A DNA stretch of 25,000 nt from Takakia lepidozioides (taxonomy: Eukaryota; Plantae; Bryophyta), in contig JAKLZA010000075.1 in assembly GCA_030704615.1 (NCBI GenBank), forward strand, positions 1-25,000, given 5' to 3'. The notes below the pieces were generated by a model. The model was given only the letters and a program-made list of their open reading frames with translations, had not been told where the DNA came from and ran no database searches. This document shows, piece after piece, positions 131 through 24,132 of this stretch. Numbering within the stretch: the first letter of the stretch is position 1; each line of letters starts with the position of its first letter. The translations under genes were made by a program, and so were the position numbers.

Positions 131-1085
131 CTGAATGCTTTATTGGAGCATTTCCATTGTTCCTTGTATGCAGGTCACCTTGGTATCAAGAAGACCGTGG
201 CCCGCATCTATTGGCTGGGCATTCACCGAGACGTCACATAATTCATCTATAAATGTGAAGGTTGACGTGCTAACATTGCTCTCCCTAGGGCCCGGATCTT
301 GTATGAGCTGCAGCTTTTGCCTGTCACGCATGCTTTTGCTTGTGTTGGCATTGACTTAATATGACCCCTCACACTCACATCAAAGGGTCGAAGCTACCTT
401 TGTGTTGCTACCGACTACTTGACTAAGTGGGTAGAAGTCCGGCCTTTGCGTTCCAAGGCTAATGATGTTGTAGCTCAGTTCTTCTTCAATGAGATCCTTA
501 TGCGGCATGGGTGTCCTCAGGAGATACTAACGGATCAGGGCAAGGAGTTTTATAACCAGCTCCTCACGATGATTTGCTTCAACTTCGGTGTTAAGCATTC
601 CACCACAGCCCCATACCATCCCCAGACCAATGGCCTCATGGAATGCTTCAACCAAACTCTTTGCCGAATGTTGGAGAAGAATGGCGCACTTACCAGGAAG
701 TGGGATACCATTCTTCCCCCTATTCTCTTTGCTTATCGCACCGCCATGCATGCTAGCACCAAGAAGACTCCTTTTGAGTTGTTGTATGGTCGCAATTGTG
801 TTTCTCCTTTGCATTCTACCCCTCTTATTTCTACTGTTGCTGATCCGGTTGATCTTGATACCTTTGTTGAGGATCTTCATGCTCGGCATGCGATGTCCAT
901 CCATGATGCCAAGACGAACATTGGTAAAGCTCAGCTAACCCATGCCCGTAATTTTAACAAACGTCAAGTATTCTAACATGTTTCAGGTGGGACAGACCGT
1001 GTGCGTCGATTACAGCATGGCAAGTATGCATGCAAATCTAAGCTCAAGATCGATGGTCCATACTTTATCTATCAGATTTTACGTA
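131..1085 (+). pseudogene. Retrotransposon integrase remnant (HHCC zinc-binding domain, DDE core, GPY/F motif)
   Basis: One frame reads HCSLYAGHLGIKKTVARIYW...KCEG*, then VGIDLI*PL...ATDYLTKWVE, LTDQGKEF and HPQTNGLMECFN. In-frame stops lie at 239, 263, 362 and 974. FQVGQTV is in a shifted frame and DGPYFI is at ~1052-1069. Confidence 0.92.
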
Positions 1086-2699: not shown

Positions 2700-5600
2700 T
2701 CATCCTGTCCACTTCGGAGTCCACACATCTGCCTCTTTCACAGGAGCCTTACTCTTTTTCAACTCTCGCCTTTCTAGTCTCTTCAAAGCTTTCCACTCAG
2801 TTGTCTTGGTCAGTCTGACTACCTCACCATTGTCTAACTCTACACCTGCTTCATTCTCTTCTAGATTTTCCTTGCCCTGAGAAAATTCCTCAATTAAGTC
2901 GTCATTCTCTGTCTCCTGCTCTGTAGCACTACCGAACATTGCCCCCTTGTGCAATACTGTCTCCATTTTTCTCAATACTTTGCGCTTTGGCTTGGCTTGC
3001 CCCACTAGCTGCAAACCCTGCTCTATCAGCCTAGAAGCACAAGCCTGTTGTGAGTTTTGTAGCTTACATAAGATACATCACTGGCTATTAATAATGTCAA
3101 CACTTGCATGCCAAGAGCCAAAAGTTCTACAGCAACCATGGGAGCAATCAGTGTAGCAACCAGTTTGACTGAAGTTCCGAAAGATGTAAAAACTGAGGAG
3201 AAGGGCAAGAGAAGAGAACAGGCATGAAACAGTAACAGGTACAGAGTGAGGATCACCAAACGCACATGCCACAAAGTTCCTTCTGCGAGAGAGCAGAGTG
3301 ATGGTCCACAAAAACATCCTCCAATCGAAGGCTAAGCCACACATAGAGCTCAAGGACCTGCGATAGCACACAGATTAGTCTGTTTGCTTGCAAATTTGGA
3401 AGGTTGAAGAGAGTGCAGCTACATCCTGCTATATACTGGCATACTTGCAGGTCAAATTTCAAACTAGGAATACAGCCTTCATGGAATGAAAAAATGAGAC
3501 GAACAATGAAAGCAAACATGAAGTAGATGCTTTAAGATCACATGAAAATTATTCCCACAGAGTCGACATGGAAAAAGGGGACACCTTATGCATAGACTCC
3601 AGTTCTTGAAGTGCACCCTGAGTCCGGGGGACTCGAACAGTGGCGGGTGTGAGCATCCGCTCTAATGGCACCCTCTGACTCTTTGCATAGTCACTGGCAA
3701 ACTGCACTTACCCAGCCACCTCCCAGTTAAGAGATTAAAGTTTGACCTAATCGAAAGGTCTTATATGGCCTTCAAAAAGCCACAAACATAGACACAATCT
3801 GTCAAGGTTAGAAACTATGGTGTGAATACCCCAATAGCAGGATGTGGTAAGTCAGTACACGTTAACCACCTACAATACAACATAAGCCCTGCCATTAGTT
3901 TGGGATACCTTTGGCTGACCATAGGCCCTCAAGCATTGGAGAAATCTTGGGACTGTCAGCCAAACAATTCACCTAACAGCAAATGTGTCAAGGAGTCTTA
4001 CAATCAGCGGTAAACAAAGCTGTTAATATCGTGTTAAGTCTGGGATCACAATGCACATTCACAAATCTTTTGCATAAAGATTGTGAGTTCTGTCAAATAT
4101 GGAGTTATGCCCATTCATCCCATTCCATGCCCTTGGCCATGGAATTTCAGGTATCTTTCTACGCGGGTTTAGGCGCAGGGTTGCCAGCAAATATCCAACT
4201 AGGAACCCATACACACAACTGTAATGACAAGGTATCATACGGAGGCTCACCTGCAGCAAAGCGCCCATGGCTGTATGATCATTTGTATCCACAGGGCTGT
4301 AACAACACCATTGCCAAGAGGAAACACTGAGAGGGAGGGAGCAAGATGGAAAGAGCCAGAAAAATGTCTATGCACGAAATGACTGGAGGACAAAAGCAAG
4401 GGAAGAGGGATGCAGACACTAAATCCAAGGTCATAAATAACACATGTTCCACATCTGTCAAAGACCTAAGTTCGCAGTCTTTGATGTGAGAAAGCCAACC
4501 ACCTAGCGACTACTTGCATCTTCCCTCTCTAAGAACTGAGCTTCATAGCGATGAAATGAAATGGTACTTTATAACGTCCGCGGAAAGCTCAAAGAGGTTA
4601 TGGGACAGAATGGAAAAACAAGAGCGAGGAAACAAAACCAGAGCCAAAAAACAGCCCAAAAGCAACTACTGCTCAAGCGATTGTCTAAGGGTCAAGGCCT
4701 CGTGCAGGTAAGCTGCCAAGCATTTCTCATAGTGAAAGCCTTCAGTGAGAGATTGAGTTCCACGGAATAGACAGTGGAATCTCCCACGGATCTCATAATA
4801 GAGGGCAATAAAAGAGGAAGTGAACTTCAGTTTCAATTTCCTGGCTACGCCCGGTGCAAGCTGGGCATAGGCGGTCTCTCGTTGAAGGTTTTCCCATCTA
4901 CCAGTCTCTATCCGTAGATTGTGGGAGCCCACCCCGAACCGCCCCAATGCCCTCCCGAGGTAAGGAGATAAAGACGGCACAAGGTAATTGGGCCGCAAGA
5001 TTCTATCATCACCGAGACCCAAGAAGGTCTCTCGATAGAAATGGAGTTCTGTTGTGAGATTGGGTAGCTTAAAAGTTCTCCTGACATGTAGTTCCATAAG
5101 TTCTCTTCTAATGAGTCTGTTGCGATCCTGTTTGGATGTGATTTCCACCCCTTCTGGATTTTGTGGCAATAACGAAGCAACAGAGAGTCCATGCGCTAAG
5201 AAAAACTGCACACTCGAGCATACCAGGAGTAGAGAGAGGATGGTTCCATACTGTACTCACCAAATACAGAAGAGAAAGCGATCCTGCAAGGAAAGTGGTA
5301 ATTTCTCCAGCAAATCTGCTATGATCTTTTGCCCCCTCCCAACCAATCCCCACACCCAAAATGTCGTCTAACATGTCACTGATATAAACCGCAACTATTT
5401 TGAAATGTGGATCCATAGGAGAAGATAGAGTTCATTCTAAGAACTCCTGCACAATTTGAGACAGACGTAATACGTATGTGAGTCCACAGCACTGGAGCAT
5501 ACTTCACTTGTTATGGCTCAATCAACATTGAGATACAACTTGCACAAAGAAGATAGAGATCCAACCAGCATGCTGTCACAGTCACGCATGAAGTACTCAG

Positions 5601-9495: not shown

Positions 9496-10294
9496 TTTAG
9501 CTAACACGTGCTTCCTTTATGTACATAATTGGGGTCAACACAAACTTCCACTCGAATTCAACGCTTACACATCTCAGAGATCACCGGTCCATGACTTTGA
9601 TCGAGGAATGGTGGGTAATCCAGGCATTCAGAAAAAGTCCCCTTTCTACAAACTACCCCATCAACCCCATTCGACTTCCCGTTTCAACACGGCATAGATT
9701 GGGACAAGCTCTACCTAAAATTGCCACATTTCTAACAGCCCACAGAATTCCTGAATCTACAGCAACTAGGTATTTGGCTCGCCACATCTGCTGAACAGCA
9801 TGATGATTGTCAACTCAAGTATTGTCTCTTCTCCCTCTGCGTGCATCGTCTAAGCCGGCAACCCACAATGCACAGTCTGCGGGATCCACAGACCGCAACC
9901 TCAAATGGGTGTTGTAGTGTAAGTGGATGCCATACAGCTTCAGCTCAAAGATCCACAATGAACATCTCTGGCCTCCTTCTTTTGAAGGCCTTGGTAGGTA
10001 CAAATCTAAAAACTGTTTGTAAAAGAGCATGCAGCCAACAGTGACGAACTGGTCAAAAAAGGCGGCCCTTTCGGTAAGTAATGAAGTATCTGCCCACAAT
10101 TGTGTGTATATTATTATGTAGGTAATGTATGCTCCCAAAAAAGCTGACTTTTGCTCATGGTTTCATCAGTCAGCCCCTCTACAAAGCAGGCGGAGTGTGT
10201 GTGAGCGGAGCAGAAAAGGGAAAGAGCAAAGGGTGGGGGGAGGGGGGTGTGTGGGGGGGAGAGAGAGAGAGTGAAGGGAGACAGAGAGAGAGGG
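9496..10294. promoter_or_regulatory. Shared divergent promoter / 5' UTR region between SUV3 and cytochrome b5 reductase
   Basis: The two start codons are ~800 bp apart, head to head. An AT-rich TATA-like stretch lies at ~10107-10117. Confidence 0.5.
10231..10294 (+). repeat. G-run cluster (G-quadruplex motif) followed by a GA microsatellite, directly upstream of the reductase ATG
   Basis: GGG-t-GGGGGG-a-GGGGGG-tgtgt-GGGGGGG (10231-10259), then interrupted (GA)n up to the ATG. Confidence 0.8.
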
Positions 10295-11140
10295 ATGGGA
10301 GTGATGGAGCAGTTCCAGAGCGACAGGGCGACGTATGTGGGTGTGGCCCTAGCTCTGGCAGCCGTGGTGGCAGGGGCTTCGTATGTGTGGCTGAGCAGAC
10401 GCAAGCCCAAAATGGTTCTGGATCCAGAAAATTGGAAGAAGTTTGAGTTGGTGAAGAAGGATCAAGTGAGCCACAACGTTGTGAAGCTGCGATTTGGGCT
10501 GCCTACTCCAACGTCTGTGCTGGGGCTTCCCATCGGCCAGCATATTAGCTGCCTTGGGTTTGACTCGGAAGGTGCGGAGGTGGTGAAGCCATACACGCCT
10601 ACAACCCTCGACTCCGACGTTGGCCACTTTGAGTTGGTGGTCAAGGTGTACAAGGAGGGTAGAGTTTCTGCCTACTTGGGTCGAATGAAGGTGGGGGAGA
10701 AGCTCACATGCAAGGGCCCCAAGGGCCGCTTCAAGTACAAGCCCAACCAGGTGAGGGCCTTTGGGATGATTGCTGGTGGAAGTGGCCTGACCCCGATGTA
10801 CCAGGTGGCACGGGCGATACTGGAGAACCCCAAAGACAAGACGCAAGTCTATCTCATCTATGCCAATGTGACATACGATGATATTCTTCTTAAGGACGAT
10901 CTAGACCACATGGCAAGAGACCGCCCTGACCAATTTAAACTGTACTATGTTCTCAATGAGGCTCCAGAGAAATGGGACGGTGGTGTGGGATTTGTCTCAA
11001 AGGATATGATCAAGACTCACTGCCCTCCCCCTGCTGCTGACATCCAGATTTTGCGATGTGGACCTCCAGGCATGAACAAGGCCATGGCAGGCCATCTCGA
11101 CGCTCTCGGCTACTCCAAGGAGATGCAGTTTCAGTTCTAA
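10295..11140 (+). CDS. CBR1: NADH-cytochrome b5 reductase (CBR1 type, N-terminal membrane anchor), intronless, 281 aa
   Basis: Hydrophobic anchor YVGVALALAAVVAGASYVWL. FAD-domain motifs LGLPIGQHI and KPYTPTT. NADH-domain motifs GMIAGGSGLTPMYQV, LIYANVT and ILRCGPPGM. Ends MQFQF. The first ATG is at 10295; the ORF-track start at 10247 is a GTG inside the repeat. Confidence 0.95.
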   Translation: MGVMEQFQSDRATYVGVALALAAVVAGASYVWLSRRKPKMVLDPENWKKFELVKKDQVSHNVVKLRFGLPTPTSVLGLPIGQHISCLGFDSEGAEVVKPYTPTTLDSDVGHFELVVKVYKEGRVSAYLGRMKVGEKLTCKGPKGRFKYKPNQVRAFGMIAGGSGLTPMYQVARAILENPKDKTQVYLIYANVTYDDILLKDDLDHMARDRPDQFKLYYVLNEAPEKWDGGVGFVSKDMIKTHCPPPAADIQILRCGPPGMNKAMAGHLDALGYSKEMQFQF

Positions 11141-11999: not shown

Positions 12000-14900
12000 T
12001 TAGATCAAATGCCGCACAGCAGCAATGTCTTCTTGCAACCGGGCTTGGTATTTCTGCACTCGCACTGGGACATTCTTCTCATTCCACTTGCAAGATGTCA
12101 CGCCTCTGCTCAGTGTGAACACCTCTGCACTCGTAGGTCTCCTGTATCAATAATACAGACAGTCTAAATAAATCAAATAGAGAAGAGTACATGAGGACTG
12201 GTCATGCATGTATGCCTCAGGAGCAGAGGCAGAATTCGAGTTTGTAATTGCTTCAAAGTGATGAAGTGGACTTGCAGGGATGTATTAGTATCTATGGCCT
12301 TAGTTCGCATGAGTCTGAAAGTACTTGTGTACTGTAGCGAGCAGACATGAGCAGGCCCAGTAGGCTCAAATATTGTGTGGAGTTTGATACCAAGTGGAAG
12401 TCTCTGGCTGTAGCATACTAGTTATTTCAGCTGCACCTCTTCACTCGAATTGATTGATTAGAGCCCTGGTTCTTATGCCATGGTTACCACGGCTATCAGT
12501 ATATCATTGGCTATAATACCATTAACTCTATGAATGAAAGAACAACTTCAGATATTATATCAAAGCTCTAGCCCTGTGAAAGCCTCAATCTTTGCATTCA
12601 CAGGATGGGTACAATACGTATGCAGCCATACCTGGCAGTCAATGGCACATTGCACTGAGGAGACACTGCTCTTGCTGTACATGAGACTGTATGTGGCCGG
12701 ATAGATACTGTGATACCGCACTGATGCCTGGTAGATGGTATCCCAATTGCCACAGCTGCAGAGTGAGGCCTCCATGTGGTGGGTGATTTAGGTCTCGGTG
12801 AGAAAGAAACAGATTGTGGTCGACATGCAAAGATCCCTGCAAATTGAGGCCTTGAAGAAAACCCTGTAGATTGCGGCCGGAAAGAAATAGCAGCAGATTG
12901 AGGCCTTGTTGAAGTAGCTGCAGATTGGGGCCGTGTAGAAATTGCTGCAGATAGAGGCCTGGCAGGAAAGGGTGTCTCAAGTCTTGGGGTGAAGGATACA
13001 GAATGGGGTCTGCCTGCCAAGAACCCCTCGGAGTGGGGCCTAGGTACATAGATCGCCGACTGTGGGCGAGAGAGATCTCCGGTGCTCTTACACTTGTTGG
13101 AAAACTTGGCAGGATTGAGATGTGTATGGAGCCTTACGCTGGAAGGTTGATCCCAAACATAGCCACCCATGCCAGTTGTGGGTTTGACATGTTTGCCTGT
13201 GCCCACAAACGGTGTTTCCCCCAGTTGAGTCACCCATTGTCTCTGGGTGTCCTCCTGCCCAGCAGTATGTCTGTCTTGCAATTGTGAACCCAAAGGGGGT
13301 AGTGGATAGTCGCGAGTAAGCGACAGACAAAGTTTTGGAGGCTTCGGAGCATCTGTACCAGGCCAGAAGGGAACACGAATGGGAAGGGGTGCAGGTCTCC
13401 AAGAATACCTTGGTTGATATTGCGCTATTTCTTCAGGCTCCTTTTCAATAATCCCTGGCCAGAATGGACAATTTGGTCCAATTGGAAGTGGGTTATGATG
13501 ATGAAGACCATCTCGATCCAGTCTATCAAACATGGGGACGGCTGAACTCCAGTTTGTTGTTGCTGCAAAGAGGGGTGGTTGCAGCTTGCTGTAGATGACA
13601 TCGTCTCTGCTCCTCAAAGACTTCGGAACACACTCTTCAGGAGGTCGAACAAGTTCCTGACAGAGCATCAGACACAATTCACATTTACCACAACTGGAGC
13701 TAGAATAGTCCAATTTCATGAAGAGTATGGAAATCAGATCTTCATAGGCAGGATTCATGGCAGATATAGCCAGTGGACATAATGGTGCAGAGATGCCATC
13801 GGTATTCCACACCAAAAGACAATGTCCATTTGCTATCTAACATGTACTTCTTAGTCTATTTCTATGTTGTAGTGTTTGTATTGTCATACAAACATGCAAA
13901 CAAGGGCACCTTACTTGAAAGATACTCCCTTTTCTGATCCAGCATGGATCTTCGAGAGGTTCCGGATCAGTTTCGAATGCAGAGTCACACTCTCTTGCTT
14001 TGTTACAACCTTGAGTTCCCATCCGCTCCCCATGGGTCTCTGTGGGGTGTTGTAACACCTCATCAAACCGGGTTTGCCACATAGGAGGGTTTTCCACAAA
14101 TGTTCGGTGTCGGGAGTGCACAGTTGTTGGTGGAAAAACCATATTGCTACAGCCCTGCATGTTTGCTTCTGTGGGTTCAAATACCATGCTGTTCAAGATT
14201 CTTTCTGGGGCACCAAAACCCTGGTGAATATGGCTTGACACACAACTTGCAGGCATGTACCTCGGACCTCGTCGTTTTGAGGGAACGATTGGGATAATCT
14301 TTTTGAGCATCTTCCAGTAGTCTAGATATCCTGTTGGGAATTTTTGGTTTCAAGTCTGATCAGCATCTGATCCAGCACTTCTGTAGTATCTTGGTTAGAC
14401 AAAGCATGAAGATACAATTGGCAGAATGGGTGACACAAGCATTTAACTTTCAAAGGTGTTATTTTCATTCTCTTTCTTGAAGTTCATGTTGATGCAACAA
14501 TGCCCGCCTGACCATGGATTAGAATCATCTTTTGCTGCATAATGGGGGGTGTGAAGGTAGGTGAGCTCCCCCACCTTTTCCATCAGACACAAAGGCTGTT
14601 GACAGCAGCTTCAGCTCTGCTGGGTTGAGGTCCACTTGCAGTTGTTTCAAGGCCCACCCTACCTCCCCAATGGTTAGTTTTCCTGCACATGGCCACGTAT
14701 GGACACATATACCAATATTCCACTGTGGAGGTCCATGAAAACTGTCATCAACCTAAGGATCTCTTAAAGGTCCCTCCTATTTTCGTGTGTGGTGTATGGG
14801 CATGAAGTGAATCAGTGACTCTCTCTCTGCTTGCTCTGGCACCCTCTTCACCTGTCCCTTTCTCCTTCAGCAGAGACATTGCATGACTTGACCTGACTAA

Positions 14901-17900
14901 TGAATACCATCCCAGGAAATGTTTCTTATAAAAACCTCCTCTCCCGGGACCCTAATCGGAGAAGAAACAAACCACTGTGTGCAGGATCTAGTCTTCTGAA
15001 AGTATCTGCAACCTCCTTTGGTTGAGTTCCCTGTATTTTCTCCTGCAGTCAAATGCACTTGTGAGACAGGTTGTGTTCATCGTATTATTGTTATAAAGAT
15101 TGGCCTGATACAGAGCCAAAAGGGTGTTGTTTATGTGTGCAATGCACACTCAGAGTCATATGACAGTTTGATGTGTAGGTGTGTGCAGTTAGGTGGGCGG
15201 GGGTGATACCTACATTCTACTATGACCTTCGCCTTACTGGCGAAAATCCACTCTCATCTACCTATCAGAACCACAAAATAGCCCCTCAAAGGAAGCAGCC
15301 TGCAATTTGGAATTTTGCAGTCGCCACCTGGGTGCAAAGCGCCAAGGTTGCAAATCCTCTTTTGACAGCTGCAAGTTGAATCCTGGCCACTACACTAGTG
15401 CTCTGCTACGAGGATCGGGAACTGTTTGAAGGAAAAAAGGTGTGCAATTTACTGACAATGCACCTATAAATTGTTTCAAACAACTTTTCTTGCAGTTGTT
15501 CCTAATACAGAGGGATGGAACGCTCTACTGGTAGATGGAGGGCAGTTTCCCTTTCCTAGGTGCACAATTAAAATCCGTTCTTAGCTAGAGGGAAGACAAC
15601 TCAAATAAAACCTAACCAGGTCAAGTTACACCCAAGATCCGTCGAAACTTGCAACCTCCCAAATAACTACCACCCTAGAAGATCTTCAATGGATGCAAAA
15701 CTATTGGAAATCAAGCCCCAGAGAAGCTAGCGTCATGAATAGTTCTCATCCAGGTTTTGGAAATACCAGGTAACAAATATACCTGTACCCTGTCTCTCAG
15801 GAGGGTCATCGCTGCTGATTCCGCCCCCTGTTGTTGAGTTTCTCTTGCAATCCGGTTTCTTGAATTTTGCTTCCTCTTTAGAACTCCATCAAGCCATGTG
15901 GCGCTGCCAACATCAGTACCCTGCATGCCCCACTTTGTGGGTCAAGAGTGCTGGCGGCCAGTATTCTAATTTCCCCCAATCTGTAAAAACTTGATGGATA
16001 AAACAAACATCGATACATTGAATTCAGTAGTCCTGAGCTCCCAGGGTTGGATCTCTAAAAATGTTGCTAAAAACTGCAAGGACAGAATTACTTTCCACAA
16101 ATTTCCATTCCCACTTTCATTAGGGCCCATATGACCAATTTGAGGATGGACTACAGATTCACAGGTGAACAATCAATGCTCTAACCTCCTCTATGTAGAG
16201 TCTGAGAACTTGACTTACAAGTTTTTCCTTGTGTCCATAATTCTTATGACTGCTTTGTAATAAGCAAAAAAGTGAGGAACAGCTTCAGAATGGGGACCTC
16301 AATATCATCCACATCAAGGCTGAGATTGTTTGGGCATCCAAAGCTTCGATTGCGAGTCCGCCTTCTGCAGTGGGAGCCGTGAATGTCTTGATAAACCATA
16401 GAAGAAGGGTCCCGCACGAGACGTTCCTCAAAGGGCCCATTGATATCCTTCACTTTTAAGCACAAGTCTCGGACTCCTCCTTTACCTAGACCCATAGTTG
16501 AGGGTGTCATAAAAAATGATGTCATGACAGATACATCAACTGCTTACTTCCGTTTTACTACTATTGTCACTGTTTTGGAGAGGTGAGTTTAGGATTTGGG
16601 AAAAGAAAGTCTTACTTGGGTGTTATTGGCCTAGGAACTAAACATGACATTGGTAGCTAGTGTAAAATAGTGGAATAGCAACAAGCAGTGGTGAGCTAAT
16701 GTAATGGCACGCCAGTATCCCTTCGGTCTTCCAATACCCTTGAACTTATATGTGGCTGTGAGAGGAGGTTTGGTCTACCTTCCATGCTTTTCCTAAGAAT
16801 AAGAAAACCAGCCTATCTATGCAGGGTCTCGATATAGCAGAATTATTCAGCAACTCTGTCTAGATGCTTCATCAATTTACGTGTCAGAAAGAAGACATAA
16901 GACCATTCCAATGAAGGTCTAGGTGTTAAGAATATAAGAGCTCACCAAACCTGCGGCGATGGAAAGGCCTCCATCCAGGGCATGTGCCTTCTATATCCTG
17001 AACATTGAGAGTCTGGGAGTTTCTCTCCTGGACCAGTACCCCATACCGTACATGGAAAAGGGATTGAGCATTACCTTAATATTTCCAACTCCTACCTTCA
17101 AAGAGTGTGCATGCCCTTGGTGGACTTGTTTTCTTTCAACTAGTGGTTATAAGGCAGGACCATGATGTACCATTGAAAATGAAACATCATACATCAGACC
17201 ATCAGATCAGGCATTGGATCACATCAGACCCAGCAGCACAATCAAGAGGCTTGCAGTGATACTCCTCCTTCTGGCTTGAATTGCTTCTTCCTCCAGGACA
17301 TCTGGATCCTACTTGGCAGTTCCATAAGGCAACGCTGCCCTCCTTGTTTCCTAAACATCAATAATATGTATGTCGGCAACTTTTGCAGGCCATGTCAGGC
17401 TACCCATAGAATGTATGATTACTCCATCCACCATATTAGAGTCATTCCTTCAAGGTTACCTGCTGAGTGAAAAGCTTACAGAAGTTGAAATTCTGGAAAT
17501 CGGTCGAGCTCCTTTGATGTCCCGTGTGTCCAGGCTGCCGAATCATAGCAAGGTTCTACCACCAATCACTTCAGGTAAATGAAGTGGCTTGTGACAGCCT
17601 TCCATATAGCCACTTGGCCCCCAGCAGCTAAGCTGTTGACCAAGTATTGAGTACTCAGTGAAGGCATTGGGAGTTACCTGTCTCGGAGAAACTTGGGTAC
17701 ACTTGGAATATTCTCAGCAAAGGAGGGCAGGGTGTAGCGTGGTTCCAGCGGATCAGTGTTCCTGGCTGGGACAGGCCCTATTCTCATGCTCTGCATCCCC
17801 ACATGCACATATTCTCGAAGTGTTTTCCAAGAGAAGAATGTGACTTTGGAATGCACAAAAAGTTCCCACCCTTAATGATGTAAGGCTTTTCTAGTGACCT

Positions 17901-20900
17901 TTACACCTGTCTAACTTCCAAGGGCATTCAAAGGAAAATGCTGACAAATTTCTCAAATAGAGCGGACCCCTTCAAACCCCAAGGTTGTAACTACTTTCAT
18001 GGTTCCAACAATTATGCACATTGTCTTGCTATGACTGTATTGTGAATAGATAAGCAATACATCTTACAAACAGTAGTGAAAAGTGTAGGTGTGCTTGAGG
18101 CTCCAAGAGAAGAATATGCAGCCCCAGCCATTTGTAGGACACCGTTCAGAATATATCAAGAGCAAACATATCATGGGGGACGCATACACCACAGAAGTCC
18201 AAAGACTCTGGTCAGTGTAGACAATATAAATCCAGTTCCCAATATAAATCCAGTTTATATTAAGTAGCCGAGGTGGTAAGAGTACCTTCCAGGGATCCGG
18301 ACGATTTCCATCGATGTCATCAGTCGTGAGGTTGTGGTGGGGTCTGTTGACTTTGGCTGTGATCACCCCACCCTAGTATCAGAAAAGTACTTGCCAGAAT
18401 TATGACATTGGTCTCCCACCCCTCTCATCTCCTTGATACTCTGATGTCAAATTGACCAGATCTCTAATCAGTACGATATCCATCGAGTCAGTGGCCAATT
18501 AATGTTGAAACCAAGGACAAAGTAAACGGCCATGGATTATTGGAATCCCTTTAGAGGTAATATGAGACAATAGAGCATCTTCACCCATTTCAGTGAAGAG
18601 CCCAAGAGCCCTGCATCTGGCATCCTCAAGCAGACTCAGTGCAAGCTTTCCTTGTTACGCAATGGTCATCCTCCTATGTAGAAGATGCAAATCACATGCA
18701 AGTTAGAGGCTCTCACCAGGGATCCAAACGTGTGGTGTGCTTTTTGGAATATCCCGATCCCAGTTCTTCGTCATAGTACATCGCTGATTGCCACCCATGA
18801 CCCAATGGTACAATGTTTTAGAACATGCTGAACTGGATAGACATAGTGACAAATAGGTGGAGTCTACATGAAAGCTATCACTATATCGTGTCTGTTCCTT
18901 GAATGTAAATGTATAGGACTTACATGATAAGGGCCACGATTTGTGTACTTGTATAATGGGTGAGGTTTGGCGAGGGCAATCCCTGAGTTCCCACCAATAC
19001 AAGTAAACCACATTAAAGTCACAGCTTCTTAGAATCATTGCTACATGTCTTTATAACCATGTAAGACATACAGCTGGTTTGACATTGATTTTTCAGTTTA
19101 AATTGGCTAGCATGGGCATGTTCTTGATTGGAAAGTATAGATATTCAACTGGGCAAGATGCATATCTTGGGGCAACTGTACATGGTGTAGAATGAAGTTG
19201 CAGTCTGTCTTGTCATGCCCAAGTGGGACGGTCTAGAAAACAGGCTACCAAGTCCCCAAGCACACAAGTGTCAATTTCCCCAGCTTGCATCTGCTCTGGG
19301 CAGTGCACCCATGGTTGATCTGGAGAGTCCAGAGATATGTAGGCCACTGAAAGACTCTTAAGCTGAGTACTACATATGCAATATCTCAGCTCAAGTCAAG
19401 TCACTTTGTTATGGAGAGGTATTGAAGGTGAAGCGAAACTAGGGCCAGGACCTGAAGTGCAGTAAGAAGGCAGGGAAAATCATGCAGGAAACTTTACAGC
19501 GAGCATGATTGATGTAGCAGTAGAATGTAGATTCATTTCCCAACATACCCTCAACAGAGAGAGTGCATGGACCCGTAGCATTGTAACTTGTTCTCTTCAG
19601 TAACCCTGTTTTGCATCTTCGGTTAAGTCTGCAAAATGGGAGCCGTGTAAATGAATTGGACTTCTGATCAACCAGCAAGACATCAAGGAAGGGTTTTTTT
19701 CAAGCTGCTAGGTAGATGGTAATGTTGAACTCAGGTTAGGTCATGGCGACTCTGAGAATGCCAGATTATTTCTAAGGTACTGAAATGCCACTAAGTGAAT
19801 CCAAAAGAAACAAAGAGACGCAACTAGCCCCCCAGCCACTCATGAGGGCAGATCCCAGAGTTGATCTAAACAGAATCCCTTGTTTACCTCATTGTGCAGA
19901 GCAGCCTAAGCAGCTAAGATTCACTTCAAATCGCCAAGCTGGACCTTAAGCTGACCGGCTCATCCTGCACTTATGGTGTCCTTCCAAAATCTACGCAAAT
20001 CCTCCTGAAAATACCTCTCAGAGCAGAAGGACACCTAACACATGAAATTTGCTGAACCAATTACCCAAGCAAATGGACTTTGCCCCAAGTACCCCTCCCA
20101 GCCATCACATTGCCACTTGCTAGATCAGCCCTAGATCCCAGCTCCTTTGGGGATTTGAAGAATCTTCCACCCCTCCCACTCTGCAAATATCAGTCATGGT
20201 TCTGAGCGTTCTCTGATCCCACTGAGTGCTGAATTCAAGGATTCACATGATGTGAGGTAACCATGTAGGAGAGAATCAATACCAAACCCAGGGTTTAAGA
20301 ATTTGTTCTATTGCGCGAAACCTGATTTTGATATTATGAGATACAACACCACTAGTTGGGCTAAACCATCTGGAAGGCCCAAACTAATTTTTTCACCTCA
20401 TTCATTGGGGCCGGGGGTGCCAGAGTCTTCTTCCTTCTCTTCCTACCCCTGCTGAACTGGACCGACATGATGTGTAACTAAAGTTCAAAATCGTTGCTAT
20501 ACTCCTGAGCCTATCTGAAAATGGTGTGAAGCTAGTCTACCCAAGGACAGTGAGTTCTCTCATGAGGCGGCGCTAATTTGTGCGTCAGAGACCTCAAGTG
20601 TGGACCTTGACTCGCCTTGTTGATATCTTCTGTCAAGGAACCTATCGGTGGTTCTCAGCTGAGCGGCTTTACAAGTTCTTTGATTATGCGGTGGATCTAT
20701 TGCCTATCTATTGATCTGGAAAGTTGAAGCGGGGAAGGCACAATCTGTAATTACGGACCACATTGCCTTTTGGAGGTCAGTTGTGACGCATTGCGCAGGA
20801 TTTTCGTTTTTGTAGCTGGAAAAGAATCTCTCATCGGGATTTTATGAAGGCATGTTCACAAACAGCCAAAGCTGCTGGAACGCCAATCCTCACAAGCTCT

Positions 20901-21379
20901 TCAAGGCTTCTCGTCACAATTTCCAACAGATTCAAGGAGAGGAAACCTGAGACTCAGCAGCTGAGTGGCAAAGAGCAAGTCCTACCTAAAGTGTGTTCAG
21001 TTGTCGCACAAAATCAACAGACACGTGAGCCAACATAGAGAGAAAAATGAGCAGGGAGAATTGCTTGCCGGTGATCGTCGGCAACGGAGAGAGTATCAAG
21101 CGACATGGACTTGAGAGTCTTGGTGTACGGGAAATTGGGCTCGAAATCATCTTGCGGTATTGAGACCAACACGAGATCATTTTTCTGCTGTGATACCCAT
21201 TGATCTCGTCGTTGTGGCCCCCTGGCCAGAGGGCTAGTTGCAGGAGTGACTGGCCGGGCAGAGCTCTTAGCTCGAGGAGGGCTGCCACCCGAATGGGGAG
21301 GGCTAGTGCGGGGTGTGAGGGGCCGAACAGAGATCTCCTGCGGCTTGGGCTTCAGAACGCGCGTCTCGCATATCGTCAT
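12000..21379 (-). CDS. Uncharacterised ~974-aa protein with DIxG repeats, EF-hand pair and RPxS array (candidate ciliary/basal-body protein), 15 exons
   Basis: Exons (minus): 21379-21069, 19628-19549, 18982-18924, 18783-18717, 18356-18286, 17790-17678, 17534-17480, 17027-16946, 16485-16298, 15920-15783, 15042-14973, 14682-14575, 14330-13915, 13656-12632, 12141-12000; total 2925 nt. All phases match, and motifs are completed across junctions (LDVDDIE|GT, FRRLDPAHSG|KLTIGEV, VSDGKG|YLDYWKM). The ATG context is GCCATG with an in-frame stop just upstream. Intron 1 requires a GC donor. Extra small exons cannot be excluded. Confidence 0.8.
12685..13070 (-). repeat. Coding minisatellite, ~27-bp unit encoding RP[QHLK]S...
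   Basis: RPQSAIYVP RPHSEGFLAG RPHSVSFTP ... RPLSAAIST RPQSAATST RPQSAAISF RPQSTGFSS RPQFAGIFAC RPQSVSFSP RPKSPTTW RPHSAAV ... RPHTVS. Confidence 0.85.
18222..18255. repeat. Small intronic tandem duplication
   Basis: caatataaatccagtt occurs twice with an 18-bp period. Confidence 0.85.
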
Positions 21380-22926: not shown

Positions 22927-24132
22927 TCACACTAGGTAGTCGTTCTCCAGGGTGGGTCGCGTCCTCGTGCCTGCTGCTGCTGGGGCTCTGCTGTGTCCAA
23001 TCAACGCGGTTTGCAAGGTCTCTCCATTGTCAGCATGGTACTGCATCTTCGCAAAGCGTTTCCTCTCTCTGTACCGCACAGCGAAAAGAGCTAAGATCGA
23101 TGAGATTGCTACGAGTCCGACCACACCTAGCACAGTTCCGAGGGCAACCTTCCATGCATTCGAGTGGTGCTTTGAGGTCTTCCTGGCAGGTGCGCCCCCA
23201 ACTGACGGGCTGCTAGGTTCTCCAGAAGGGGAGAACCCCGGGGCAACAAGCGGGCTTGGCGAAGGCGCTGGCGCCTGGCCCAAGAGAGCGAAGTCTCCAA
23301 GATGTCTGGCGGAGCATATGTTGGGAGACAGGCTCACGTTGCTTGTGGTGGCGGTCCCATCATCGTTGAAAGATACACACAGAGAAGGGGGATTCAACGC
23401 AAGTTGTGAATTTTGGGGAATTGTCACCGATATTGGTTGCTCTGTTGCATTCACACTGAGACGAGGCAGGGGCGTGGCAGACGACAGGTTTGAAGCACTG
23501 TAGACCATGATCCCAAGAACTGGACTAACCAGAGCCTGGCCCGATAGAGGAGAAGAATAAACAACCATGTTGCCGAAGTCTCTGTAGACCAGAACCACAC
23601 TGCGGAGGCTGACACCTTCCAGCACCAGTCCAGGGGGTATAGTGAAGTTTCCCAGCGTAACCCCACGTCTTCTAAGGCTGCCGGTGCGAAGCCTAACTGC
23701 TAGCACTGTTACATTTGCGAGGTCTACTGGCAATGTAGCTTGGTAGACTTTGCCAGTTTTGGGATGGGCAAGGGCCTGGAATGCTGCTAGCTGTATTCTT
23801 TGATCGAGATAGCTTACATTTGTTCCTGCTTCTGCAAGTTCGCGATCCAACCTTACAACTCCATGTGAAGCTTCCAAGCTTCCGAACAAAGTAGAGAGAA
23901 CCCACATGAATACACACGACCACAGAACATTTCGTTGCAATCCGATACTCAAGCGTCGTTTTCCTTGGCATATTGCCTCTGTTTGAGCCTTCTTTTCATT
24001 CCCTCCGAGAGACTCCCCTTGATGTTGGCGAGAACCATCGACCCCACCGAGACCCCGGCCACACATTTTACGCAAATCTTCGACAGGACCGTGGGGCCAA
24101 GAAGAATCCGATTGCGACTGTGAGAAATGCAT
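22927..24132 (-). CDS. DUF1191-family plant membrane protein, intronless, up to 401 aa
   Basis: Family-typical segments LDQRIQLAAFQALAHPKTG, AVRLRTGSLRRRGV, LVYRDFGN, SPVLGIMVYSA and CSARHLGDFAL. TM helix WKVALGTVLGVVGLVAISSILALFAV. C-terminus GETLQTALIGHSRAPAAAGTRTRPTLENDY. The true start may be a later Met. Confidence 0.9.
   Translation of the reverse strand: MHFSQSQSDSSWPHGPVEDLRKMCGRGLGGVDGSRQHQGESLGGNEKKAQTEAICQGKRRLSIGLQRNVLWSCVFMWVLSTLFGSLEASHGVVRLDRELAEAGTNVSYLDQRIQLAAFQALAHPKTGKVYQATLPVDLANVTVLAVRLRTGSLRRRGVTLGNFTIPPGLVLEGVSLRSVVLVYRDFGNMVVYSSPLSGQALVSPVLGIMVYSASNLSSATPLPRLSVNATEQPISVTIPQNSQLALNPPSLCVSFNDDGTATTSNVSLSPNICSARHLGDFALLGQAPAPSPSPLVAPGFSPSGEPSSPSVGGAPARKTSKHHSNAWKVALGTVLGVVGLVAISSILALFAVRYRERKRFAKMQYHADNGETLQTALIGHSRAPAAAGTRTRPTLENDYLV

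Follow-up and report, generated by a model that had tools for sequence, protein, structure and literature searches.

A 15-exon gene lies on the minus strand of contig JAKLZA010000075.1 of the moss Takakia lepidozioides (assembly GCA_030704615.1), from position 21379 to position 12000 of the 25,000-nt stretch analysed here (positions 1 to 25,000 of the contig, referred to below as the window). Comparison with its relatives identifies it as an intact, single-gene ortholog of an ancient and uncharacterised protein family, and the locus is almost certainly a real gene of the type represented by Mp3g09930 of Marchantia polymorpha. The moss member is new; the family is present in the databases but unstudied, and its N-terminal region, common to plants and ciliates, is undescribed. 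The family has the right distribution for a component of the sperm flagellar apparatus, and no Pfam model, solved-structure match or paper was found for it.

Structure and orthology of the gene

The window was searched by tblastn with four liverwort proteins of 926-953 amino acids (aa), one of which is a liverwort-like protein from a Logan assembly. Collinear minus-strand matches extended from residue ~10 of these proteins at 21208 to the last residue at 12003, and the stop-free minus-strand segments between 21385 and 12003 hold the motifs named in an earlier, sequence-only reading of the window. For each gap between matches, the phase-compatible donor/acceptor pair that best fitted the liverwort alignments was taken as the junction. 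The resulting 15 exons join in phase into a coding sequence of 2,925 nt, which encodes 974 aa and has a single terminal stop. The sequence-only reading had proposed a hidden gene of 15 exons and ~974 aa spread over 9.4 kb, and this independent rebuild reproduced it to the residue. A gene finder based on codon log-odds and splice scores gave an overfitted model of 24-26 tiny exons and was replaced by the homology-guided junctions.

All 14 acceptors are AG and 13 of the 14 donors are GT. The remaining donor, that of the 1,440-nt intron 1, is a GC at 21067-21068 in the context GCAAGC, making this a GC-AG intron; it was chosen because the GT alternatives would delete the conserved DDHR-LNRRCKTGLL stretch. 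The Marchantia ortholog has a GT donor at the same position and phase. The exons are as follows.

Exon 1, 21069..21379, minus strand, 311 nt: ATG at 21379; Pro/Ser/Arg-rich N-terminal extension and LKSMSLD; GC donor (GCAAGC) at 21068
Exon 2, 19549..19628, minus strand, 80 nt: entry phase 2; LNRRCKTGLL...CTLSVE; intron position and phase as in Marchantia
Exon 3, 18924..18982, minus strand, 59 nt: degenerate first module, GIALAKPHPLYKYTNRG
Exon 4, 18717..18783, minus strand, 67 nt: placed by tblastn and splice-site fit
Exon 5, 18286..18356, minus strand, 71 nt: module NLTTDDIDGNRP
Exon 6, 17678..17790, minus strand, 113 nt: module RNTDPLEPRYTLPS at 17722-17766, and PKFLRD
Exon 7, 17480..17534, minus strand, 55 nt: module SLDTRDIKGARP
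Exon 8, 16946..17027, minus strand, 82 nt: module LNVQDIEGTCPGWRPFHRRRFG, where conservation within the family is highest
Exon 9, 16298..16485, minus strand, 188 nt: modules KDING and QDIHG; beginning of DDIE|G, interrupted by intron 9
Exon 10, 15783..15920, minus strand, 138 nt: closing part of the last module, then the helical linker (helix predicted in orthologs)
Exon 11, 14973..15042, minus strand, 70 nt: entering helix; EF-hand loop 1, first half (DPAHS|G)
Exon 12, 14575..14682, minus strand, 108 nt: remainder of EF-hand 1 and first half of EF-hand 2
Exon 13, 13915..14330, minus strand, 416 nt: EF-hand 2 ends with GYLDYWK; then a middle region of low conservation
Exon 14, 12632..13656, minus strand, 1,025 nt: PFWPG at 13453-13467 and 13357-13371; bulk of the R-P-x-[ST] array, with the 27-nt tandem repeat (12835-12960)
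Exon 15, 12000..12141, minus strand, 142 nt: final RPTS site; ARLQEDIAAVRHLI (12003-12044), the motif of the C-terminal helix; stop TAA at 12002-12000

BLASTP of the spliced moss protein against Marchantia OAE35486 returned one segment covering aa 53-501 with 46% identity (E 5e-111), a similarity well above anything expected by chance; identity was 40-45% to the proteins of Riccia, Calypogeia, Selaginella and two ferns, and 33% to that of the green alga Chloropicon. In an alignment of 12 sequences no gap falls at any of junctions 1-12, which lie in the aligned part, and all 12 of the corresponding moss introns match the Marchantia locus (L005, LVLJ01000170.1) in codon position and phase. The C-terminal half of the moss gene contains two introns beyond those of Marchantia. 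In an alignment of 17 family members, the moss protein retains all 16 invariant columns and 34 of the 37 that are conserved in at least 80% of sequences (94%), the range in the other land-plant members being 89-98% with the Ginkgo fragment left aside. In EF-hand loop 1, the near-invariant Arg that follows the first Asp is replaced by Pro in the moss.

In the maximum-likelihood tree the moss protein falls within the land-plant clade (support 95/99) and outside the liverwort clade (98/99), and also outside the fern plus Ginkgo clade and Selaginella. The branching order of the family agrees with that of the species, each of which has a single copy. The moss protein has the collinear motifs of the family, namely LKSMxLD, TEGI..A..P.LYK.xNRG, the DIxG modules, R.T[ND]PL.P.Y.LPS and DIEG..PGW[RK]P..RR.FGK; the repeats are followed by a helix, one EF-hand pair and a C-terminal helix ending in [ED]DI..VR.L, as seen in the alignment and in the C-terminal tblastn match.

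The nearest relatives are Marchantia Mp3g09930 (OAE35486.1, 933 aa) and the proteins of Riccia fluitans (KAL2633021.1), Calypogeia fissa (CAM6128484.1), Selaginella moellendorffii (LOC9630602) and Ceratopteris richardii (KP509_08G044800), which are annotated only as hypothetical or as 'EF-hand domain-containing protein'. The sequence-only reading could match the gene to no named one, and the comparison likewise gave no match to a named or characterised gene. The moss protein is 40-46% identical to these orthologs over the N-terminal ~400 aa. Its motifs come in the same order as theirs, beginning with LKSMxLD and ending with the C-terminal [ED]DI..VR.L, and like them it contains one EF-hand pair, a PFWP motif and RPx[ST] sites. 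The moss differs in having a Pro/Ser-rich N-terminal extension of ~50 aa, a longer tandem RPQSA array, the two extra introns in the C-terminal half, the GC donor of intron 1 and an Ala at position 3 of EF-hand loop 1.

Members of the family and relatives in rumen ciliates

A HMMER search with the largest exon (12634-13656, minus strand) against 1.84 billion representative proteins gave four matches below 1e-10, which were those of Calypogeia fissa, Riccia fluitans, Marchantia polymorpha and one Calypogeia-like protein of a Logan assembly. Marchantia paleacea and Riccia sorocarpa were added when the Marchantia protein and family profiles served as queries. Apart from the Selaginella and Ceratopteris proteins named above, the family includes a fern protein of Adiantum (L7F22_016255), a Ginkgo protein (Gb_03457), whose poor gene model holds the repeat region, and a 566-aa protein of Chloropicon roscoffensis with the full architecture, including the C-terminal REDIATIRALR. 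Several environmental relatives of 560-650 aa have the same architecture, and short ones contain repeats only. The Logan contigs of entries P0016 and P0001 are genomic in appearance.

Both parts of the protein belong to one gene. M. paleacea, two Riccia species, Calypogeia, Selaginella, Ceratopteris and Chloropicon each have an annotated protein that spans the full length. In addition, a 2,579-nt intronless contig of SRR2103735 contains a whole 751-aa fern open reading frame (ORF) together with untranslated flanks, and therefore at least one species has both halves on one mRNA. The two halves occur together in orthologs from more than five lineages as well as in this fern mRNA contig, in agreement with the single gene of the sequence-only reading.

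Public gene models often represent the family incompletely. The Tak-1 and Tak-2 models of Mp3g09930 (602 and 501 aa) do not contain the N-terminal repeat half, and the 602-aa Tak-1 model begins at a Met just ahead of the EF-hand region. The Ginkgo Gb_03457 (P0021) and Adiantum L7F22_016255 (P0023) models are chimeric or mis-spliced, only part of each belonging to the family; therefore, orthogroup-based screens would mishandle both. The 933-aa Marchantia model (L005 5028-5159; P0002, P0014) has a 130-nt 'intron' without GT-AG ends that is flanked by the 12-nt direct repeat CGAGCGTTTAAG, and which is probably an annotation or assembly artefact. No moss protein of the family was found in any moss proteome within a collection of 15 billion proteins, a result that does not cover the annotation of the Takakia genome itself, since exact look-ups showed that the neighbouring ORFs of the window are not in this collection. 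The published screens consulted here start from annotated proteomes and use Chlamydomonas for comparison (Koshimizu et al., bioRxiv 10.1101/2021.07.25.453666). The family would be invisible to screens of this type because it is missing from moss proteomes and halved in the Marchantia Tak-1 models.

A metagenome scan with the family profile revealed 80 loci; the same scan with moss exon 14 gave no relative. Some of these loci lie on G+C-rich algal contigs, and most on AT-rich contigs of ~2 kb (20-26% G+C), many of which end in CCCCAAT/ATTGGGG repeats. In the rumen ciliate Entodinium, telomeres are reported to consist of the repeat CCCCAAT (PMC6211341), and by their sequence the capped ~2-kb contigs are gene-sized chromosomes of rumen ciliates. 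Each of the ciliate contigs contains one gene of ~600 aa, for example L011 171-2027 and L016 123-1949, with some 60 more in the range L011-L085.

The N-terminal ~200 aa of these proteins are collinear with those of the plant proteins and contain DIxG and R-x-T-N-P-L-x-P-x-Y modules, including PKFIRDSIDIKDIQG, which identifies the two regions as homologous. The ciliate proteins differ in having no EF-hand, PFWPG or C-terminal motif; the remainder of the chain is of low complexity and rich in Asn and Lys, and the NPLxPxY module occurs two to three times. As judged from these features, the ciliate members constitute an undescribed branch of the family without the EF-hand.

Protein architecture and comparison with known proteins

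The features that the sequence-only reading had assigned to the protein, namely a Pro/Ser-rich N-terminus, a helical linker, an EF-hand pair, two PFWPG motifs, an RPxS array and a terminal ARLQEDIAAVRHLI, are all present. Its count of ~8 DIxG repeats was slightly too high: there are six strict modules and one degenerate, about 7 in all. Along the 974-aa chain the features are arranged as follows.

aa 1-58: Pro/Ser/Arg-rich extension, moss-specific
aa 89-96: LKSMSLDT motif
aa 127-146: degenerate first module (E-G-I, aa 130), then PLYKYTNRG
aa 186, 239, 263, 293, 313 and 340: six strict D-I-x-G modules, spaced by 20-53 residues
aa 205-219: one R-N-T-D-P-L-E-P-R-Y-T-L-P-S module
within aa 258-282: best-conserved block of the family, DIEGTCPGWRPFHRRRFGK
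aa ~352-392: helical linker, by alignment to orthologs
aa ~396-455: EF-hand pair, by alignment to orthologs
aa 461-640: middle region of low conservation
aa 650 and 682: PFWPG motif, twice
aa 783-929: 12 R-P-x-[ST] sites, partly encoded by the 27-nt tandem repeat
C-terminal end of the protein: ARLQEDIAAVRHLI

The 27-nt period at 12835-12960 was detected by Tandem Repeats Finder. The net charge of the moss protein is +11 in the repeat region and +18 in the RPxS region. In AlphaFold2 models built with family alignments, the repeat region of the Marchantia ortholog is disordered (pLDDT below 50) with essentially no secondary structure; the modelled N-terminal part of this ortholog also includes a helix of 44 residues and a pair of EF-hands, at pLDDT ~88. 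For the full-length fern ortholog, ~74% of residues have pLDDT below 50, and no more than three elements reach 70 or more: the linker helix, the EF-hand pair (86-91) and a C-terminal helix of 32 residues (~80). The predicted architecture of the family is thus a net basic chain, about three quarters of it disordered, with a fixed series of motifs and three folded elements. The C-terminal helix was considered as an amphipathic helix of the AKAP type; by-eye comparison with the AKAP consensus gave no fit.

The canonical EF-hand has a 12-residue loop with oxygen ligands at positions 1, 3, 5 and 12 (D, D/N/S, D/N/S and E/D). Loop 1 of the moss protein, DPAHSGKLTIGE, has Ala at ligand position 3, where the alignment shows Gln in liverworts and Selaginella; in ferns and algae this loop is canonical (D-R-D-x-S-G-K-L-T-x-x-E). 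Position 12 of loop 2 is non-acidic in all aligned members and is Lys in the moss. The canonical loop 1 of ferns and algae makes it probable that the ancestral EF-hand bound calcium; that of the moss is probably calcium-insensitive or weak. The 'calcium-linked' function put forward from the sequence alone is accordingly plausible for the ancestral protein and doubtful for the moss protein, with its Ala at position 3 of loop 1 and Lys at position 12 of loop 2. The Pfam EF-hand_1 model scored 33.8 in the Chloropicon protein, above its cut-off of 25.4, and an EF-hand model scored 23.5 in the liverwort orthologs, below the cut-off of 30. The separate moss exon pieces, over three of which the domain is split, gave no EF-hand match.

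These exon pieces matched no Pfam model at all, and the repeat region, for which Pfam has no model, gave no match at E<=10 in the moss pieces, in the orthologs or in relatives that have repeats only. Rfam gave no match over the whole window, and look-ups in the ESM Atlas gave no usable one. Against the Protein Data Bank (PDB), the family profile matched only EF-hand proteins, with the axonemal EFCAB6, RSP7, CFAP115, RIB57 and FAP225 at the top. Such axonemal multi-EF-hand proteins rank highest because scores sum over many EF pairs, the alignments being confined to the EF-hand region. Foldseek against the PDB found generic EF-hand folds only, none of them below E 1e-3. EFCAB6 (8i7o), Chlamydomonas RSP7 (7jtk_M) and Tetrahymena CFAP115 and RIB57 (8g2z) resemble the family in having calmodulin-like EF-hand pairs in ciliary proteins (E 1.8e-41 to 5e-19). 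However, none of them has the DIxG/NPLxPxY region, PFWPG or the C-terminal motif, and the present family has a single EF pair whose second loop lacks an acidic position 12. On these comparisons the moss protein is not a relative of any modelled axonemal protein or doublet inner protein. The assignment as an 'axonemal microtubule protein' is not supported: beyond generic EF-hand similarity, neither the family profiles nor the module profile matched any chain of a solved axoneme or doublet structure.

Disordered microtubule proteins that follow the lattice through short repeated modules, such as the Mn modules of SAXO/MAP6, the PG-rich repeats of STPG/SHIPPO proteins and many doublet inner proteins, are similar by analogy only, as long disordered basic chains with short motifs. 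Pfam includes a SHIPPO-rpt model. There is no sequence relationship to SAXO/MAP6 or STPG/SHIPPO proteins, the present family giving no such match in Pfam or the PDB.

Possible function and genomic neighbourhood

Whether the moss protein functions in flagellate cells is, in our estimate, an even question, and the evidence that raises it is phylogenetic distribution. The family was found in bryophytes, Selaginella, ferns, Ginkgo, Chloropicon and rumen ciliates, all lineages with flagellate cells; the named holders all make such cells or keep the genes for them, and Ginkgo is the sole seed plant among them. Chloropicon has kept a near-complete flagellar gene set (PMC6731263). Flagellar genes are kept in Ginkgo and cycads and were lost in conifers, Gnetum and angiosperms (PMC9023351). 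No angiosperm or conifer protein of the family was found in word-indexed, length-limited searches of the protein collections, an absence that is reasonably safe for the hundreds of angiosperm proteomes and not safe for any single species. A role in the spermatid or sperm flagellar apparatus is suggested because the family was found only in flagellate-cell lineages and not in seed plants with non-motile sperm; the protein would most likely act in basal bodies, in the spline/multilayered structure or in flagella. The sequence-only reading had named such a profile as its check: presence in bryophytes, ferns and, for the N-terminal region, ciliates was borne out, as was the lack of finds in angiosperms, but the expected Chlamydomonas homolog was not seen. 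Its interpretation as an uncharacterised protein of the flagellar apparatus is partly supported and reasonable.

In this role, the disordered N-terminal chain would probably lie along a repeating, probably microtubule-based surface and bind it through its 6-7 DIxG/NPLxPxY motifs. Direct binding to microtubules is a tentative suggestion. The helix and EF-hand pair would probably form a folded docking or regulatory module, with the C-terminal helix as a possible docking module. The basic R-P-x-[ST] array may be a region of multisite phosphorylation and a possible target of basophilic kinases; in Marchantia, sperm motility is reported to be under the control of cAMP/PKA signalling (PMC11032487).

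Several results weigh against a flagellar role. The same word-indexed searches found no animal, Chlamydomonas or Micromonas protein of the family, although each of them missed some true members (Selaginella once, for example), and because the family was undetected in these organisms it does not appear to be a core ciliary component. In each of the two EF-hand loops of the moss protein a canonical calcium ligand is missing. The module profile, built from 21 units over 35 positions (L-x-[TV]-x-D-I-x-G-x-x-P, 8-12 residues, R-x-T-N-P-L-x-P-x-Y-x-L-P), and a repeat-only relative matched no chain at E<=10 among all PDB sequences, including the Tetrahymena axoneme and doublet structures. No paper was found on any family member, Mp3g09930 and SRR2103735 occurring in no searchable paper, and the family is not among the sperm-plant-specific, antheridium-expressed genes given by the screen of Koshimizu et al., whose supplement has neither Gb_03457 nor an EF-hand entry.

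The last of these observations also favours the strongest alternative, in which the protein is a scaffold or calcium-related protein of the vegetative cytoskeleton, signalling or chromatin, unrelated to flagella, and its absence from seed plants with non-motile sperm is coincidental. Basic Ser/Pro/Arg-rich regions would suit nucleic-acid binding as well, and DUO1-type AACCG[TC] sites, of which the whole window has six, are absent from the 1.5 kb upstream of the gene. This explanation is nevertheless rather unlikely, considering that each named holder makes flagellate cells or keeps genes for them, with Ginkgo as the only seed plant (PMC9023351), and that ciliates share the N-terminal region. 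If the protein is not related to sperm, the finding is that of a well-conserved orphan family.

That the protein is a microtubule inner protein or another structural protein of axonemal doublets is improbable. The disordered basic chain, short conserved motifs and EF-hand pair do resemble those of many inner proteins, and the top PDB matches of the family profile are axonemal; these matches, however, come from the EF-hand region only and are inflated by its repetition in the matched proteins. The PDB holds doublets of Chlamydomonas, Tetrahymena, mammals, sea urchin and Leishmania, none of which contains a chain matching the repeat region or module profile, and a Chlamydomonas homolog was not detected. 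A more open, speculative possibility is that the DIxG/R-x-T-N-P-L-x-P-x-Y region represents an unrecognised flagellate-cell module of pre-plant origin (green lineage and alveolates) that would bind a repeating cytoskeletal lattice outside the set of doublet inner proteins, such as the microtubule roots of basal bodies (in land-plant sperm, the spline and multilayered structure). Its apparent absence from Chlamydomonas and animals and its omission from moss annotations would explain why standard cilia gene lists missed it. In the searchable literature, no described component specific to the spline/multilayered structure of plant sperm was found.

Still less probable is an unexpressed or decaying relic in this moss. 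The lost ligand of EF-hand loop 1, the replacement of the near-invariant Arg by Pro and the lack of a moss protein in the searched collections would fit such a state, but the 2,925-nt frame is open over 15 exons with a usable splice site at each, and the conserved residues are kept as well as in liverworts and ferns. A division into two genes, an N-terminal repeat half and a C-terminal half, could be read from the Tak-1 and Tak-2 annotations, which span only the EF-hand region onward, and can hardly be correct given the full-length proteins and the fern contig described above and the passage from moss exon 10 to exon 11 in phase without a stop.

For the flagellar-apparatus reading, Marchantia Mp3g09930 or the moss locus offers a concrete and genetically tractable candidate, and the conserved ~200-aa region common to plants and ciliates provides a handle for a binding-partner search.

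The window has a G+C content of ~45%. Directly upstream of the 15-exon gene and on the same strand, a single-exon ORF of 401 aa (22927-24132, minus strand) encodes a DUF1191 single-pass membrane protein (Pfam E 2.4e-47), and the promoter space of the 15-exon gene is therefore at most ~1.5 kb. On its other side, an intronless ORF of ~280 aa (10247-11140, plus strand) encodes a protein of the NADH-cytochrome b5 reductase type with Pfam FAD_binding_6 and NAD_binding_1 domains (both E ~1e-30). This ORF, which could be a retrogene, occupies a patch of high G+C content immediately following a tandem repeat that is GA-rich and has a 21-nt unit (10255-10301). Its exact protein is absent from the 15-billion-protein collection. 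Transposon debris is present at 419-976 (plus strand), a retrotransposon integrase-core fragment (Pfam rve), and at 4666-5211 (minus strand), an ORF with no Pfam match that by eye resembles the C-terminal part of a non-LTR (long terminal repeat) retrotransposon protein.

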